From Rebecca billardiae RCC1528 (lineage: Eukaryota; Protista; Haptophyta): a stretch of 64,000 nucleotides of DNA. Shown here piece after piece: positions 17,652 to 23,818 of the stretch. The position numbers were made by a program, and so were the translations under genes. Location: NCBI GenBank assembly GCA_965240325.2, contig OZ251244.1:248001-312000 (forward strand). The letters run 5' to 3'. Within the stretch, counting starts at the first letter, position 1. The number at the start of each line of letters is the position of its first letter. The notes below the pieces were generated by a model that was given only the letters and a program-made list of their open reading frames with translations, was not told the origin of the DNA and made no database searches.

Positions 17652-18338
17652 ATGGCGACGACGAAAGCGCACGTCGAAATCCAGTACTGCGGGTGTGCGC
17701 CGCCGAGCGGGGGCGGCCGTGGCGCGCGCTGTGCCCGGCGCGAGCGCACGCGCGGCGCGCCGCCCTTCACCCGTGCGCGGCACCCCGCCGCTCCGCGCGC
17801 GCAGCGGCTGAGGGTACGACCGTTACTTCCACGCTCTCAAGGTGCGCGCTCTGGCGGCGCAGCGCTGGCTGCCGCGCGCGGCGCTGGGGCCGGACCGAAG
17901 CACCGCGCGGCGCGAGGCGCGCCGCGGCCTATCCGAACTCAGACGCGTGCCGCGCGCCGCCCGTGCGCACGCCGCTCGGCGCAGGCGCGCATCTTCAACG
18001 CGTTCGGCGCGAGCGTGGACGTGCGCCCGCGGCGCGACCCGGGCACGACGGGCAACTTCGAGGTGCGGCTGCGCGGGCACGAGCCGGAGGAGCTGATCCA
18101 CTCGAAGCGGACGCGGCAGCAGGGCAAGTGCGCGTCCGACGCGGAGGTGCAGGCGGTGCTCTCGCACATCCGCTCGCACCTCACGCGCGCCGAGACGGCG
18201 GCGCACAAGCGCAAGCGGCCGGCGGCCGACCCGGAGCCGGCGCCCAAGCTGAGCAAGGCGGCCGCGCCCGCCGCGAGGGAAGCCGCGGCGCCGGCAGCGG
18301 ACGCGCCCGCAGCGGAGACCCCCGCGTCGGCAGACTAG
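17652..18338 (+). CDS. SELENOW: Selenoprotein W / Rdx family; exons 17652-17692, 17805-17841, 17985-18338; Sec-UGA at 17809-17811
   Basis: The spliced protein is MATTKAHVEIQYCGG-U-GYDRYFHALKARIFNAFG...PGTTGNFEVRL...LIHSKR. It has the CxxU motif, GxFEV and LIHSK typical of SelW, and a SECIS lies downstream. Confidence 0.9.
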   Translation: MATTKAHVEIQYCGCAPPSGGGRGARCARRERTRGAPPFTRARHPAAPRAQRLRVRPLLPRSQGARSGGAALAAARGAGAGPKHRAARGAPRPIRTQTRAARRPCARRSAQARIFNAFGASVDVRPRRDPGTTGNFEVRLRGHEPEELIHSKRTRQQGKCASDAEVQAVLSHIRSHLTRAETAAHKRKRPAADPEPAPKLSKAAAPAAREAAAPAADAPAAETPASAD

Positions 18339-18485
18339 TCGCGCTGCGCAGCAGAGAGGCGGGCTCGGATGCCGGTCCGCAGCCCCGCCGGAGTAGTTAC
18401 CCGCTTGGCCCGCGAGGGCCGAGGCGGGCGGCCGGCCGATGGCCTGTCAACCGTGGCCCTGCTGGCGTGTGAACCCGCGCGCATC

Positions 18486-18536
18486 ATGACGGACGAGGCG
18501 TCACCCGCGTTCGCACAGCGGACGCTTCGTCCTGAC
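18486..18536 (+). promoter_or_regulatory. SECIS element (AUGA core, 12-bp helix II, ACC apical bulge)
   Basis: ATGAC 18486-18490, then GGACGAGGCGTC (18491-18502) pairing with GACGCTTCGTCC (18521-18532, one G.U), then TGAC 18533-18536. It lies 148 nt after the stop codon. Confidence 0.85.
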
Positions 18537-19107
18537 CACACGCGCGACGCGCTCCAAGCCTGGGCCTGGCCGTGGTGCCGGCCATCGCTCTTTGACTTTC
18601 CTGTAGTCTTTATTTAATTAATTGTACCTCCTCGGTGCTACTCAACTTGGATACAACTTGGATACAATGAGTAGTTTTCGATGCAGCTAGTAGATTCGTT
18701 CATACCGATCAAGCAGGTGAAGCAGCGTGTTTGATGTGCTTTCAATGTTCATTAAGGCACGATGATGAATAATATTGAAGCTGGAGAGCTGTTGGCGTTC
18801 ATCGTCAGGGCCCGTGAATGGATACAAATCATCAGCAGCAGGGCTGGAGGCTTCGGCCGCCCGTCTGATCACCCGGAGCCCGTTATAAAGGGGAATTTAA
18901 AAGTGTTTCCTGACATGATGAAGACGGGGCCTGACGGGCAGCGATATCCCCATATTGGCCGTACCCGCCAGATGGGTAATCACACAAACCTCGGGAATCG
19001 GCCAATATAATCCAGGCTAGGAGCACAATCTTTGGTCGTCGCTCCGCGAAGACGCGCGGGCGGGAGGACTGCGGTAGCGGTGCACGGGGCGCGCGCGGTC
19101 CGGAGCC

Positions 19108-22100
19108 ATGCCGTGGCGGCGGCCCGGCCTCGTGATCATCTCCGACCCCGGGCCCGATCCAGATGACGCCAAGTGCGCTGCGCGCGCGCGCGCGAGACGC
19201 GCCCCCGCGCGACGCAGCTTGCCTGCCGCCGCGCGCTGTGTCTGTGAGACACACCCACGCACACACACACCAGCTCGATGGCTCATCCCCGGCGCGCACA
19301 CACTCGCGCGCGCGCGCGGTCTGGTGGGTGCAGGTGCATCCTCGTCGCGGCAGTGCTGCACACGCTGCGTCGGCTGCGCCTCCTCTGCGTCGTGTGCAAC
19401 GGCGGCGGGCAGGCGCGCGAGCGCGCGACGCTCGCGCGCTGCCTTCTCGACCACCTCGGCGCGCTGGACGTGCCGGTGGGCGTGGGCTCGCAGGGGTTGG
19501 CGTGCGCGGGCCAGCCGCACGAGTACGCGCTCGACGGTTTCGACGCGGTCGAGCCCGCGCGCCTGCACCACGGCGCCGACCTGCTGCTGCGCGTGCTGCG
19601 CGCCGCGCGCGGCCGCTCGGTGGACGTGCTGTGTATCTCGTCGCTGCGAGATCTGGCGGACGCGTGCGCGGGGCACGCGGGGCTGGTGGTGGCGAAGGTG
19701 CGCCGGGTGGCGGTGCAGGGCGGGCTCACGCCCGACCCGAGCGCGAGGCACGGCTACGTGCCCGACACCAGCGTGAACAACGGTGCTGCTGCGCTGCGCG
19801 TGCGCCGCGCGCGGCGCCGGTCTCGTGCGCGCCGCGCGCACCGCGGCGCTGAGCGGTTCCCCGCGCGCGCGCGCTCGCCGCGGCGTGCAGGCTTCGACAC
19901 GGACGCGGCGGCGGCGGTGTACGCCTTCTGCTTCGAGCGCCGGCTGCCGCTCACCGTCGTCTCGCGGCACGCGGTGCCGATGCTGCCGATGCAGCTCGCC
20001 AAGTCGTTCGCGCAGCGCACCGAGTGCCCGGTGATGCGCTACCTGGCGGACGCGCAGTTCCTCGGGCTGGAGGGGCTGTGGCAGAAGCTGTGCGCGGGCA
20101 AGCTGCCCGCGCGCTGCACCAAGCAGTGGTACTTCGAGACCTTCTGCGGCGTGGGCGCGGAGGAGTTCCGCGCGAGCGGCTACGCGCAGCTCGACGCGTC
20201 CGCCGCCATCGTGCAGCACCTCAACGGGTGCGTGGGGTTAGGGGTAGGGGTAGGGTTAGGGGTAGGGGTAGGGTGCGGGTGCGTCCCATCGTGCAGCACC
20301 TCAACGGGTGCGTGAGGGTTAGGGGTAGGGTTAGGGGTAGGGTTAGCCAGCCGGTGCGCGGGCCGTGCGCGCGCACGCCCACACGCAGCCCCCCACCCCC
20401 CTCCGCCTGTGCGCGCGCGCATGCGCCCGCCCCGCCCCGCAGGTACATCAAGCCGTACGACGTGTGCGCGCTGATGGCGCTGCTGCCAGGCCGGCTTGCG
20501 GAGGTGGTGCGCGCGTGCGGGCAGCAGGCGGTGGTGGGCGGCGCGGCGCACACTCTGCTGCTCGAGGGCGCGCGCCCGCTCCCCACGGAGGTCGTGCTCG
20601 AGCTGCTGCGAGACACCTACCACGAAGTGGTGCTGCTCACGCGCGCCCGCGCGCAGGGGCGCGGGGCGGGCGCCGCGGCCGGCGGCGGCGGCGCGCGCGG
20701 CCGCGCCCGAGGCCGCGAGCCCGCGGCGCGCGGCCGCGGCCGCGGCGCCGGCGCGGGCGGCAAGGGCGCGTCGCCGCCGCCGCCGGACAGCAACATGCTC
20801 GAGCTCGGCCTTGGGCGCGGGCCCTCGAAGCAGCTCGGGCGCTGCGCGTCCAAGCGGAGCGCGGCGCACGCGGCCGCGGCCGCGGCCTCGCTCTCCGCGC
20901 CGCGCGCGCGCCCGCCGCCGGTCACGCGGCTGCCCGCGCGGCCCGGCGCGCGCGGCGGCGCCGCCGACGGCGCGGCGCCGCCGGCCGCCGTGTCAAGCCG
21001 TGCGCCGCTCAGCGCGCTCGCCACCGAGGCCGCGATCGGCTCGGCGCTGCACCACGCCGTCGAGCGCCAGCGCTTCATCACGCGCGCGACGCTGGGCGCG
21101 GGCGTGTGCCTCGGCCTCGGCTGCGCCGTCGCGTACGTAGCCGACGGCGCGGTGTCCGCGGGCTCGGCGGGACAGTCGGCGGCGGCCATGGTGGACTCCG
21201 ATGGCGCGTACGCGCTGCGCGCCTTCCTCTACTACGTGGGGGTTGTGGTGGGGGTGCTGCTGTGCGGCCTCTCGGCGCAGCCCGTGGCAGCGCACCGCGC
21301 GCGGCTGCGCGCGCTGCTGCTGCTCTTCGCCCTCGGCGCCGCGGCGGTCGGCGCCGTCCACTTCCTGCCCGACCTGCTGCGCGCGGCGCGTACGGCGCCC
21401 GAGGCCTACGACGGCCCCCACGTGCGCGCGGACGCGCTCGCGCGCGGCGGGCGCGCGCGCCGGCCGTACTGGCGCTCCGTCTGGCTGTGGCACCGGCTGT
21501 ACCGCACGCTCGAGTACACGATCCTCGCCGGCCTCGGCGGCGCGGCGCTGCGCCGCCACTGGGCGTCCGCGCGCGGGATGGTGCGCGCGTTCTGGCGGCT
21601 GAGCGGTCTGTGGCTCGTGGCGCAGACGGCGGGTGACGCACACACGCTGTACCGCGCGCTCGAGGCGCGCCTCGACGCGCACGGCGCGCAGCAGCCGTGG
21701 CAGCGCCCGGCGCACGTGGCGATGCTCTGCTGCACCGCGCTCGCCGCCGCTCTCGTGCTCGGGCCCGGCTTCAGGCGGCGCGCGCACGCGCTCATCGCGC
21801 GCGCGCACGCGGCGGGCGGCGCGCGCGCCGCCGCGGACGGCGCGGGCGGCCTGCTGCCGCTGGTGGCTGGGCTGGTCGGCTTTGGCGCGGCGCAGCGCGG
21901 CGCGACCGAGCGCCTCCCCGCCGAGCTCACCGCCGAGGCCGCGCGCTCCTTCGCGCCGGAGGAGCTCGACGATATCTCGCTCGACGAGATCGCGTTCGCC
22001 TGCCCGCTGCGGCACCCGCCGGGCGCGGCGCCGGACGGCGGCGACGGCGGCGGCGGCGGGGGCAGCGAGCGCGCACGCGGCCGTGGCGCGTGCTTGGGCG

Positions 22101-22907
22101 CGAGCCCTCACAGCGCCGCCGCCGCCGGCAGCGGCAGCGGTGGCGGCGGCGGCGCGGTGGCTGCGCGCGGCTCGGCCGTGCGCACCGAGCGCGCGCGCGG
22201 CGCGGCAGAGGCGGCCGGCGCCGCACCGACCCCAACCCTAACCCTAACCCTAACCCTACCGCACCCGCAATTCAACAGACGCGCCGCCGCCTCGCCCTCC
22301 GCGCCGCCTGGCCGCGGGCACGGGACGCCCGCTGCCGCCGCGTGGGGCGGCGCGCGCGGCAGCGCGGACGCCCGGGCCTCGGCCGCCGCCGCCGGCTCGC
22401 CGCCGCACGCGCCCGCCCCCGCCTCCCTCGCTGTGCCGTGCGCCGGCAGCCCGCCGGGCGCGGCCGCTCCGAGCTCACCGCTCGCGTTGGCCGGCAGGCG
22501 GTGCAGCAGGCTCTCCGCCCGGGCGTCGACGGTGGGCTGCTACGATGACGGCGCGGCGCGGCTCGCCGCCGCCTCGCCGCACGCCGGCCGGCTCACCGAC
22601 CGCCAGCTGCGCCGCGCGGTGGAGCCGGCGTCCTCCGCGGCCGCCTCGCCCGCGCGGCCGCGCGCCGCGGCGGCCGCGTCGCCCGCGCGGCCGCGCGCCG
22701 CGGCGGCCGCGCCGCTCGCTGCGGCGGCGGCGGCCGCCGCCGCCACCGCCGAGGCGGGCGACGACGGCGGCGCCGGCGCGGCGCGCGAGGAGTGGCCCGC
22801 GCGCCCGGCCGCGGAGGCGGAGAGCGCGCCGCCCGGCGCGCAGCCGAGCGCGCCGCCGGCCGCCGCGCCCGGCGGCGGCGGCGGCGCGGCCGCGCAGCGG
22901 CGGACCT

Positions 22908-23003
<96 letters not shown>

Positions 23004-23818
23004 GCAGCAGCCTGAGCCGGCCGCGCGACGACTCGTCGGTGAGCTTCGGCTCGGCGAGCGGCAGCAGCTCCGCCACGCCCGCCGCGCGCGCCGCCGCGCC
23101 CGCCGTCGCGCCGTGCGACGCGTTCGTGCTGCACAGCCCCGAGGACGATCCGGAGCAAAAGCGCATGGCGCTGCGGCGCTGGGCGCGCGCGTTCGCGCGC
23201 GCGCACGGCCGCCGCCCGCTCGTGTGGCTCGACGCGCTGTGCGCGGACCCGTCGCTGCTCCCCGCCGAGCTGCTCGAGCACGCGCCGTGCTACCTCGCCT
23301 GGAGCGCGCGCCTCCTCGTCCTCGCAGGGCCGCGGCTGCTCGACGACTTGCGAGCGGTGTGTGAGCTGGCGGTGTGGGGCGCGCTCGGCGGCGCGGCGGC
23401 CGACGTCGACGTCGAGCTGCTGCGGGGCGGCGGCGGGTGCGGCGGGTGCGCGGAGGCGGGCGCGGCGGTGGTCGCCTCGTTCGACGCGTTCCACGTCATG
23501 CACGCGCGCTGCCCCGTGCCCGAGATGCTCGGCCGGCTGCGCCTCGGCGTCGAGCTGGCGGGCGGCGGCCAGTTGAACGTGGCCGTGCGCGCCTTCCTGC
23601 CGACGGTCAAGGCGGCCGCGGAGCGCGCGCGCGGCGGCGGTGGTGCGGAGGAGGGCGCGCGCGCCGCCGAGCCGCACGCGGCCGTGCCGCCCGCCGACGG
23701 CGCCGCCGACGCCGACGCAACCGTCACCGCCGCCGCCGCCGCCGCGGGCGCGTCGGAGCGCCGCGTCGCGCTGCCGGCCGGGACGTCCGGCGAAACGGCG
23801 CGGCGACGAGCGGAGTGA
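19108..23818 (+). CDS. Nucleoside-hydrolase-like domain + about 6 TM + C-terminal TIR-like domain; exons 19108-19172, 19334-19782, 19891-20227, 20443-23818 (possible extra intron near 22090-22278)
   Basis: The NH part has LVIISDPGPDPDDAK, VPVGVG, VQGG, NNGFDTDAAAAV and KPYD. Hydrophobic helices lie at about 21090-21760. The TIR part reads CDAFVLHSPEDD...VWLDALC...LLVLAGP...AVCEL (about 23114-23610). Confidence 0.78.
20235..20346 (+). repeat. Intronic GGGTTA/GGGGTA telomere-like repeats interrupted by a duplicate of the exon end and donor
   Basis: ccatcgtgcagcacctcaacgggtgcgtg occurs at 20206 and 20286, each followed by (GGGTTA/GGGGTA)n. Confidence 0.85.
22910..22999 (+). repeat. (GGC)n coding microsatellite (poly-Gly)
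   Basis: About 30 consecutive GGC codons. Confidence 0.9.

Follow-up and report, generated by a model that had tools for sequence, protein, structure and literature searches.

A predicted haptophyte membrane protein joining a HopQ1/XopQ-like hydrolase domain to a TIR-fold domain

Does a single haptophyte gene fuse a domain of nucleoside-hydrolase fold to a TIR domain, and what could such a protein do at a membrane? The question is raised by a locus of Rebecca billardiae RCC1528 located at positions 19108-23818 (+) of the window, the 64,000-nt stretch that was analysed (contig OZ251244.1, positions 248,001 to 312,000). Directly supported are the gene structure, the identities of three protein modules, the conservation of their fusion and the conservation of catalytic and ligand-contact residues. 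Enzymatic activities, substrate, topology and biological role (immunity or self/non-self signalling) are what we infer. The reading favoured here, to which we give an even chance, is a polytopic membrane protein whose cytosol-facing domains make and break a TIR-derived signal of the ADP-ribose type.

Gene model and relatives with the same domain order

The locus is read as one four-exon gene with GT-AG introns, and its spliced open frame would encode about 1,408 aa (Table 1). The predicted protein starts with a domain of nucleoside-hydrolase fold and ends with a TIR-fold domain; between them lie a conserved membrane block of six helices and then a long linker of low complexity. All three splice junctions are supported by relatives: The spliced N-terminus aligns gap-free to 10 full-length proteins, and four pieces of the window are matched by family HMM A2 at profile positions that adjoin exactly (4-24 for exon 1, 23-172, 172-286 and 285-346). 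Removal of intron 2 restores the spacing of NN.FD..AA; its junction is gap-free against relatives, and HMM positions 172/172 adjoin. The first-pass annotation, made from the sequence alone, had listed a motif N..D..AA..V, which is present as NN.FD..AA..VY and arises only when intron 2 is removed. The other features that it named, SDPGPDPDDA (19141-19170), PYD and the Glu codon GAG, also lie where it placed them. GC3, calculated as codon-position GC, is 0.94-1.0 across all three domains and 0.76-0.92 in the introns. Together with 1,138 relatives of the C-terminal domain (E<=1e-3, exhaustive protein search), this contrast argues against sequence features that arose by chance. Intron 3 holds a duplicate of the exon-3 end with its donor, and also telomere-like GGGTTA-type repeats.

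Table 1. Features of the locus; coordinates refer to the window
Feature	Position	Strand	Remarks
Exon 1	19108..19172	+	Met1 to first two bases of codon 22; ATG and GT donor read directly
Intron 1	19173..19333	+	161 nt, GT..AG; no codon periodicity
Exon 2	19334..19782	+	first half of HLP hydrolase domain; HMM A2 positions 23-172
Intron 2	19783..19890	+	108 nt, in frame, without stop codon
Exon 3	19891..20227	+	second half of HLP domain; lid residues L234, W251, F256
Intron 3	20228..20442	+	215 nt; read directly, junction supported by relatives' alignment and HMM
Exon 4 (or exons 4 and 5)	20443..23818	+	open frame to TGA stop at 23816-23818
PYD motif (P288, Y289, D290)	20453..20461	+	Y289/D290 = XopQ Y398/D399; D290 = HopQ1 D384
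Six-helix membrane block	21080..21772	+	residues ~497-727; conserved hydrophobic blocks, alternating loop charge
Post-TM6 conserved motif	21851..21976	+	consensus LAPLLGFGS..ER.P..L..EA..F.PV; among most conserved columns of alignment A3
Candidate extra in-frame intron	22090..22506	+	417 nt; alternative 22090-22278, 189 nt; inside low-complexity linker 2
TIR/HET-like domain	23111..23626	+	residues ~1174-1345; AF2 model, structure and profile matches
Glu1258 (GAG)	23363..23365	+	start of helix alpha-C, TIR catalytic Glu position

Exon 4 comprises the end of the hydrolase domain, linker 1, the six TM helices, linker 2 and the C-terminal domain. Its GC3 is at least 0.94 except between 22094 and 22450, where codon periodicity is lost. 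The candidate intron in linker 2 contains CCCTAA repeats, and GT..AG pairs whose length is divisible by three are present. Such an intron would leave the domain content unchanged.

The DNA at this locus has about 80% GC, and each of the six frames contains long ORFs. In principle, the gene proposed here could be mimicked by two adjacent genes, or by a pseudogene, if an open frame had joined the parts by chance, and the linker region without codon periodicity would fit such an artefact. We consider this very improbable: The membrane block and the TIR domain lie in one frame with GC3 >=0.94, the catalytic motifs are all intact, and transcript-derived relatives have the same domain order.

At least 15 proteins, each representing a cluster at 50% identity, have this order. 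Among the carriers are the MMETSP transcript P0025, the cDNA-like JGI contig P0043 (3,281 nt with a single ORF of 969 aa) and the genome-annotated protein KAJ1636960.1 (NCBI) of Pavlovales sp. CCMP2436. Since both transcript-derived and genome-annotated relatives share the fusion, we dropped a two-gene reading. The earlier claim of a single gene is thus probably correct, judged from the gap-free junctions, the abutting HMM pieces and these relatives. The search for the same fusion in other proteins, which the first-pass annotation had recommended, was successful. Its statement that no protein with this architecture had been described agrees with our literature searches, as no published account of the fusion was found in the literature that could be searched. 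Public databases do contain proteins of this architecture, as unnamed 'hypothetical protein' entries.

The N-terminal domain and its active site

Judged from its profile scores and the motifs it shares, the N-terminal domain belongs to the HopQ1/XopQ-like protein (HLP) clan and is not a canonical inosine-uridine nucleoside hydrolase (IU-NH); its fold is deduced from sequence matches to solved XopQ structures. Profile A2 matches XopQ (4kl0/4p5f/7jlu_B) at E=1e-40 over positions 8-331 of 347, whereas canonical NHs reach 2e-11 or weaker and align with the first half only (positions 11-183). Exon 3 matches the same three structures, and exons 2-3 of the window itself match XopQ at 7e-10. A tblastn search of 72,556 plasmids returned hopQ1/xopQ genes only, with an identity of about 26%. 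The Pfam model IU_nuc_hydro (PF01156) gives 23.2 bits for exon 2, below its cut-off of 34.2. Full-length relatives score 27-43 bits against this model, in a match confined to profile positions 5-200 of 297. A scan of bacterial and archaeal genomes with family peptide patterns confirmed no relative; it is uninformative on bacterial HLPs because the patterns are too specific to the algal family.

In the Crithidia IU-NH, a His precedes the C-terminal Asp. The residue preceding D290 is not His but Tyr, as in the LYD of HopQ1/XopQ. HLPs are defined by the calcium motif DXXXDXDD in place of DXDXXXDD (PMC11685791, PMC6019455). Exon 1 carries this non-canonical motif as D13-P-G-P-D17-P-D19-D20 (D13, D17, D19 and D20 at 19144-19167), which aligns to DPNKDPDD of HopQ1/XopQ. 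Motif type and profile scores are the grounds on which the canonical reading was rejected. Hence, of the IU-nucleoside hydrolase initially proposed, the nucleoside-hydrolase fold stands, but an ordinary N-riboside-cleaving enzyme does not.

The pair D17 and D290 aligns to D120/D399 of XopQ and D105/D384 of HopQ1, whose mutation inactivates these proteins. Y289 and D290 are invariant in 17 of 17 aligned relatives, and the full catalytic set (DXXXDXDD plus YD) is invariant in the window copy and the same number of close relatives. The XopQ contacts with ADP-ribose L345, W361, F366 and Y398 (adenine lid/phosphate) are conserved as well (17/17 relatives). The phosphate contact Y311 aligns to Leu in the window copy, which leaves room for a substrate other than 2'cADPR. 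According to a single source, a 2026 preprint, the TIR product 2'cADPR is a substrate of XopQ, which splits its O-glycosidic bond between the two riboses and yields ADPR; within the HLP clan this hydrolysis is reported for bacterial members only. Earlier reports proposed a cytokinin precursor and 2',3'-cNMPs as HLP substrates.

Conserved ligand contacts would also be expected if the HLP domain were mainly a sensor. Its ligand could be an ADP-ribose-type nucleotide from another source, for example from a virus or from further TIR proteins of the cell, and binding would switch on the TIR/HET-like domain with NAD+ depletion or cell death as output. Such an arrangement would resemble ThsA (ligand-binding domain plus NADase) and SARM1 (regulatory domain plus TIR). 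In two divergent members, P0056 and P0111, the catalytic Asp residues are lost, whereas fold and fusion are kept. Furthermore, a core of TM block and TIR domain also occurs without the HLP domain, which in this respect behaves like an add-on input module. By contrast, the invariance of the catalytic set in the window copy and all 17 close relatives is the pattern expected of an enzyme rather than of a pure binding domain. We regard the sensor as unlikely and retain an HLP domain that acts as a hydrolase as the preferred reading.

The membrane block and the C-terminal domain

An alignment of 24 sequences contains exactly six conserved hydrophobic blocks, in agreement with the roughly six TM helices noted in the first-pass annotation. 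Loops 0, 2, 4 and 6 are net positive, which by the positive-inside rule corresponds to N-in/C-in. With the topology assigned from hydropathy and charge counts, six conserved helices and these loop charges would place the HLP and TIR-like domains both on the cytosolic side. The earlier proposal of a common membrane side, derived from an even helix count, is thereby probably sustained. The membrane module is present in 57 of 206 fetched proteins. ESM Atlas returned for this block only unnamed transmembrane clusters with scores <=0.86, and Pfam found zero matches in ten long TIR-like relatives that have no HLP domain. Word-index protein searches with two parts of exon 4, the membrane region and the C-terminal region, found nothing; these blanks mean little, since low-complexity words probably interfered by filling the candidate lists.

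According to its model, the C-terminal domain is a TIR fold and belongs to a divergent TIR/HET-like family. The alignment-based AF2 model has a pLDDT of 93 and was used instead of a single-sequence AlphaFold model, which was discarded (pLDDT 44). The best 13 of 48,161 PDB representatives are TIR domains (Z 8.2-10.0, 108-139 residues aligned). In Foldseek the top 32 rows are all TIR domains, at E 5e-3 or weaker. The family profile matches the TIR domain of TLR15/TLR2 (PDB) at E=0.003 and also that of SIGIRR. Pfam TIR, TIR_2 and related models do not match the window copy at E<=1; among 110 relatives, TIR_2 matches 23 (best 6.9e-6) and TIR matches two. Pfam HET (PF06985) does not match the window copy either and finds 10/110 relatives weakly (best 6e-4), and the nearest ESM Atlas cluster is named 'heterokaryon incompatibility domain'. 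Therefore, the TIR claim holds with respect to the fold, the domain itself being a divergent TIR/HET-like one that Pfam TIR models miss. The structure searches that had been recommended thus match TIR for this domain, and for the N-terminal one the NH fold was matched through XopQ sequence profiles.

Glu1258 aligns with the Glu of the family motif LWCxxEL and of the TLR motif WCxYEL. It is the Glu in AVCEL for which the first-pass annotation had proposed the catalytic position, and this assignment agrees with our alignment. In the window copy, WC of WCxxEL is replaced by RA. Of 110 family members, 79 have the Glu and 28% lack it; among the HLP-fused members, 5/19 are without it. With about a quarter of members devoid of this residue, TIR-like catalysis appears not to be universally required.

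In a second alternative, the chemistry of one domain would be independent of the other. The TIR/HET-like domain would be a non-enzymatic adaptor or oligomerisation module, comparable to the adaptors of animal TLRs or to what has been suggested for fungal HET, and the substrate of the HLP domain would be an unrelated riboside, processed at the membrane. By motif (WLDxLCxD) the domain is as near to HET as to TIR, 10 of 110 relatives match Pfam HET, the Glu is missing in more than a quarter of members, and enzymatic activity of HET is not established. Against this, the fusion is kept across many paralogues, the Glu is retained in 72-74% of members, and the one activity of the HLP clan described in the preprint acts on a TIR product. 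We assign to this alternative the same low probability as to the sensor and continue with a protein that both makes and removes a nucleotide signal.

A possible maker and breaker of a nucleotide signal and its known counterparts

In the proposed mechanism, the six-helix block would presumably bring about oligomerisation and in this way activate the protein. NAD+ would then be cleaved by the TIR-type domain, giving a nucleotide that derives from ADP-ribose and is of the 2'cADPR kind. The HLP domain of the fusion may hydrolyse this product, or a related nucleotide with a ribose-ribose linkage, to linear ADP-ribose. The same protein could thus produce a local signal and also terminate it, or define the threshold for it. 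Two options had been offered in the first-pass annotation, coupled NAD+/riboside depletion and synthesis and turnover of a nucleotide signal. The cleavage of 2'cADPR reported for XopQ, together with the HLP identity, favours the latter, and depletion appears the weaker option.

More broadly, and more doubtfully, it can be hypothesized that haptophyte TIR/HET enzymes make endogenous 2'cADPR-type signals, that the fusion family is a self-limiting membrane maker-breaker and that the six-helix block is an activating sensor or a nucleotide-controlled pore. If so, XopQ-type effectors would copy a eukaryotic enzyme that natively switches TIR signals off, and the fusion would serve as a natural 'Rosetta stone', evidence that ties HLP enzymes to TIR signalling beyond land plants and bacteria. 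The biochemical role of XopQ/HopQ1 has been obscure for two decades, and destruction of 2'cADPR is only now proposed; a conserved HLP-TIR fusion far from land plants provides independent genomic support for a functional link. In addition, it offers a directly testable system: Do algal TIR/HET-like domains make 2'cADPR-type molecules, and do the cells have an 'off-switch' of their own? Answers could shed light on the activity of HET domains and on haptophyte immunity or self-recognition.

In Rel/SpoT, GGDEF-EAL proteins, CD38 and TRPM2, a nucleotide messenger is both produced and degraded, or is sensed, by a single polypeptide; TRPM2 combines a block of six TM helices with an enzyme fold that binds ADP-ribose. 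These are analogies and not homologies, as none of them uses an HLP or a TIR domain. The type III effectors XopQ/HopQ1/RipB of plant pathogens (PDB 4KL0, 4P5F, 7JLU_B) align with the algal domain over its whole length and share with it DXXXDXDD, the Asp pair and the four contacts named above. In contrast to them, the algal gene is eukaryotic and intron-bearing, its identity to them is about 26%, the Y311 equivalent is Leu and the hydrolase activity is predicted. Furthermore, in the alignments made, the N-terminal secretion region of the effectors has no counterpart in the algal protein, whose domain is instead fused to the six-TM block and the TIR/HET-like domain.

An algal HLP clade of heterokonts and haptophytes with members from Emiliania, Aureococcus and Thalassiosira has been described (Front Microbiol 2018, PMC6019455). 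It belongs to the same clan and has the same non-canonical motif as the window protein. There, sequences were trimmed to the NH-like domain, TIR and transmembrane regions have 0 mentions each, and the pavlovophyte fusion family is not described.

With the catalytic TIRs (plant RPP1/RPS4/RUN1, SARM1, bacterial ThsB/SpbK/AbTir) the C-terminal domain has in common the fold, the order of secondary structures and the Glu that starts alpha-C, whereas the family residues D26, W38, P50, WLD, C58, D60, G107, F141 and N170 are not TIR consensus. Fungal HET (PF06985) and its non-fungal homologues share three similar motif blocks with the algal family; a solved HET structure for comparison was not found among the structural matches. 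HET homologues in Haptophyceae and a remote HET-TIR homology have been reported (Dyrka et al., 2014). In Gephyrocapsa huxleyi, multi-TM/receptor-like TIR proteins with a response to viral infection have been described (New Phytol 2025, PMC12489294). The alga belongs to a different haptophyte class, and the authors report no additional enzymatic domains in these proteins and do not mention HLP. Like the window protein, they come from a haptophyte and carry N-terminal TM helices followed by a C-terminal TIR domain with the Glu.

Gene structure and recurrence of the fusion

The GC content of the window is 56-85% (2-kb windows) and all six frames contain long ORFs, so an open frame alone proves little. 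The gene encoding the fusion of an HLP (HopQ1/XopQ-like protein) domain, a membrane block and a TIR/HET-like domain was read from the sequence as four exons, which join to a frame of 4,227 nt (1,408 codons). Two independent checks support the splice junctions at the sequence level. The spliced N-terminus gave a gap-free alignment with ten full-length relatives across all three junctions. An HMM built from relatives only and run against the six-frame translation of the window yielded four pieces (profile positions 4-24, 23-172, 172-286 and 285-346), whose profile positions abut exactly. The same type of HMM search found no second HLP or TIR-like gene in the window. Once intron 2 is removed, the NN.FD..AA motif regains its canonical spacing; if retained, this intron would add 36 Arg-rich residues in the middle of the hydrolase motif NN.FD and leave the frame intact. 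Third-position GC is 0.94-1.0 over the hydrolase, membrane and TIR parts vs 0.76-0.92 in the introns. Because the end of exon 3 and its GT donor are duplicated, intron 3 has two alternative donors. One stretch of the second linker loses its codon periodicity (GC3 above GC2), and in-frame GT..AG pairs exist there. This means, a further intron is possible there, and the domain content would be unchanged either way.

Features of the gene and its surroundings (window coordinates)
Feature	Position	Strand	Remarks
Putative selenoprotein W gene	17652-18540	+	upstream neighbour with SECIS element, from the first reading of the sequence
Exon 1	19108-19172	+	GT-AG border
Exon 2	19334-19782	+	GT-AG borders
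Intron 2	19783-19890	+	108 nt, in frame, no stop codons
Exon 3	19891-20227	+	GT-AG borders
Exon 3 end and start of intron 3	20206-20346		last ~30 nt of exon 3 and GT donor repeated almost exactly at the start of the intron, set between GGGTTA/GGGGTA telomere-like repeats
Exon 4	20443-23818	+	GT-AG border, end of frame
Candidate intron, longer form	22090-22506		in-frame GT..AG pair
Candidate intron, shorter form	22090-22278		in-frame GT..AG pair
Stretch of second linker	22094-22450		codon periodicity lost
CCCTAA repeats	22230-22257		four repeats, in second linker
33-nt direct repeat	22640-22705		ASPARPRAAAA encoded twice, linker before TIR-like domain
(GGC)n microsatellite	22910-22998		run of ~34 glycines, linker before TIR-like domain
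Glu of AVCEL	23363-23365		motif of TIR/HET-like domain

Among the best 150 matches to the C-terminal domain, 22 also carry an HLP domain (18 at E<1e-30). In at least 15 of them, which are complete or almost so, the HLP domain comes first, followed by the membrane block and the TIR-like domain. Their sources include an MMETSP transcript (P0025), JGI/Logan contigs of 3-4 kb and the NCBI entry KAJ1636960.1 (Pavlovales sp. CCMP2436). One relative, P0043, looks as expected of cDNA: its 3,281-nt contig holds a single ORF of 969 aa between short flanks. Another, P0017, has introns, since its 935 aa are spread over 3,402 nt of genomic DNA. An artefactual gene model is unlikely, as the transcript-derived relatives speak against it. 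Thus, the fusion gene proposed in a first-pass annotation was confirmed by junctions and recurring domain order, and the same fusion was found in relatives. Pavlovales sp. CCMP2436 and Diacronema lutheri are the sources of the named relatives with an HLP domain. Since none of these relatives exceeds about 60-65% identity to the window protein in the HLP domain, the window protein is a distinct paralogue or that of another species. The D. lutheri protein KFE25_005066 (P0157, 855 aa) comprises HLP domain and membrane block and ends 20 residues past the block. Either its gene model is truncated or the protein naturally lacks a TIR domain.

The N-terminal HLP domain

The N-terminal domain matches Pfam IU_nuc_hydro with 23 bits, below the cut-off of 34.2. 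Against solved structures, exons 2-3 matched best XopQ (4KL0, 4P5F, 7JLU_B; E about 1e-9) and not canonical hydrolases. A profile of twelve relatives matched XopQ over the whole domain (E=1e-40), whereas canonical hydrolases were found at 2e-11 or weaker and over the first half of the domain only. A tblastn search with the domain of one relative against 72,556 plasmids returned seven records, all hopQ1/xopQ (~26% identity, 88-91% coverage). HLPs are defined by the calcium motif DXXXDXDD instead of DXDXXXDD (PMC11685791; PMC6019455). In the window protein, this motif is D13-P-G-P-D17-P-D19-D20. An ordinary N-riboside hydrolase (IU-NH) was rejected based on this motif and the XopQ-leaning profile and structure matches. 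Of the IU-nucleoside-hydrolase-like N-terminus originally annotated, the hydrolase domain stood and its assignment had to be changed to HLP; the earlier interpretation is thereby partly supported and made more specific.

Functional residues were mapped using the natural HopQ1 and XopQ sequences from the plasmid records. Asp mutations that inactivate XopQ (D120, D399) and HopQ1 (D105, D384) have been described (10.64898/2026.06.15.732069, 2026 preprint); the aligned equivalents in the window protein are D17 and D290. Likewise, L234, W251, F256 and Y289 correspond to L345, W361, F366 and Y398 that contact ADP-ribose in XopQ (Roq1-XopQ preprint). The window copy and 16/16 aligned relatives share the Asp pair and the four contact residues without exception. 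XopQ Y311 is not conserved, with Leu at the aligned position. Taken together, XopQ matches, calcium motif, Asp pair and ligand contacts identify the domain as an HLP that appears catalytically complete by its residues. In one main rival explanation, the HLP domain senses a ligand and thereby controls a TIR/HET death effector. Two members of the fusion family, P0056 and P0111, have degenerate HLP motifs (PYG and PYA vs PYD, Asp cluster lost) and, judged by these motifs, look like pseudo-enzymes that kept the fold. In the window copy, every motif is intact.

The membrane block and the TIR/HET-like domain

By hydropathy, the window protein has six segments, four of them strong and two weaker, and most relatives have five or six. 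An alignment of 24 membrane blocks displays exactly six conserved hydrophobic blocks, in agreement with the about six TM helices initially noticed, the sixth being followed by a conserved motif. An iterated profile showed that 57 of the 206 proteins fetched share the ~300-residue block as a homologous module, which in each case precedes the TIR-like domain. An HLP domain is missing from some of them (P0008, P0013, P0014, P0109, P0117 and P0079), although some may be 5'-truncated. Such HLP-less forms suggest that the core module consists of membrane block and TIR domain, to which the hydrolase was added N-terminally. Loops 0, 2, 4 and 6 carry a positive net charge (+1.3 to +3.1), whereas loops 1, 3 and 5 range from -1.1 to +0.3. 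The positive-inside rule, a heuristic applied here to the loop charges, therefore predicts an N-in/C-in topology with both soluble domains in the cytosol, i.e. on the same side of the membrane as previously proposed.

The C-terminal domain of the window protein has no Pfam match. An exhaustive HMMER search detected 1,138 relatives at E<=1e-3, of which 316 reach E<=1e-10. An AlphaFold model based on a 110-sequence family alignment reached pLDDT 93 and pTM 0.88. The top 32 PDB rows of a Foldseek search with this model were all TIR domains, at E of only 5e-3 or weaker. In an exhaustive comparison with 48,161 PDB representatives, the first thirteen matches were TIR domains, among them RPP1, SpbK, SARM1, RPS4 and MyD88 (Z 8.2-10.0, 108-139 residues aligned), followed by nucleoside 2-deoxyribosyltransferases. 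Hence, the annotated TIR-like domain holds at the level of the modelled fold, without a Pfam assignment for the window copy. The family profile matches the TIR domains of TLR15/TLR2 and SIGIRR at the beta-C/alpha-C motif (E=0.003-0.016). This motif reads LWCxxEL in the family consensus and LRAVCEL in the window protein, where the Glu noticed at the outset aligns with the family Glu. A second main rival considers the TIR/HET-like domain a non-catalytic adaptor. The Glu is found in 79 of 110 family members and retained in 14 of 19 HLP-fused relatives. Pfam matches among the 110 relatives are TIR_2 in 23 and, weakly, HET in 10, and the nearest ESM Atlas clusters are 'heterokaryon incompatibility' and 'TIR' fragments from Haptophyta. 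This mixed signal fits the published remote homology between HET and TIR and the HET homologues in Haptophyceae (PMC4986451).

Proposed function and comparison with known proteins

Many plant TIR domains make 2'cADPR as their chief product. XopQ and HopQ1 reportedly cleave the ribose-ribose O-glycosidic bond of this nucleotide highly efficiently and specifically, yielding ADPR (10.64898/2026.06.15.732069). The most economical reading of the window protein is that of a maker-and-breaker at the membrane: The TIR-type domain would synthesize an ADP-ribose-type nucleotide, and the attached HLP domain would break it down. We infer this because the HLP domain retains its catalytic and ligand residues, the TIR Glu is likewise retained, the two domains are predicted to lie on one side of the membrane and the fusion occurs in many paralogues. 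The finding, with its putative function, is of high interest to the TIR-signalling field.

Whereas the parts are known, their combination appears to be undescribed in the literature searched (PF01156, TIR, cADPR, fusion, haptophyte and HET topics), which contained no description of an HLP/TM/TIR architecture, as had been supposed from the sequence. Database entries are designated 'hypothetical protein' or 'IU-nucleoside hydrolase domain-containing protein' only. The XopQ preprint does not mention eukaryotic homologues or fusions (10.64898/2026.06.15.732069). An algal HLP clade has been published; the analysis was confined to the NH-like domain and made no mention of TIR or transmembrane regions (PMC6019455). 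In Gephyrocapsa huxleyi, multi-TM TIR proteins respond to virus infection; in contrast to the HLP fusions, they were described without extra enzymatic domains (PMC12489294).
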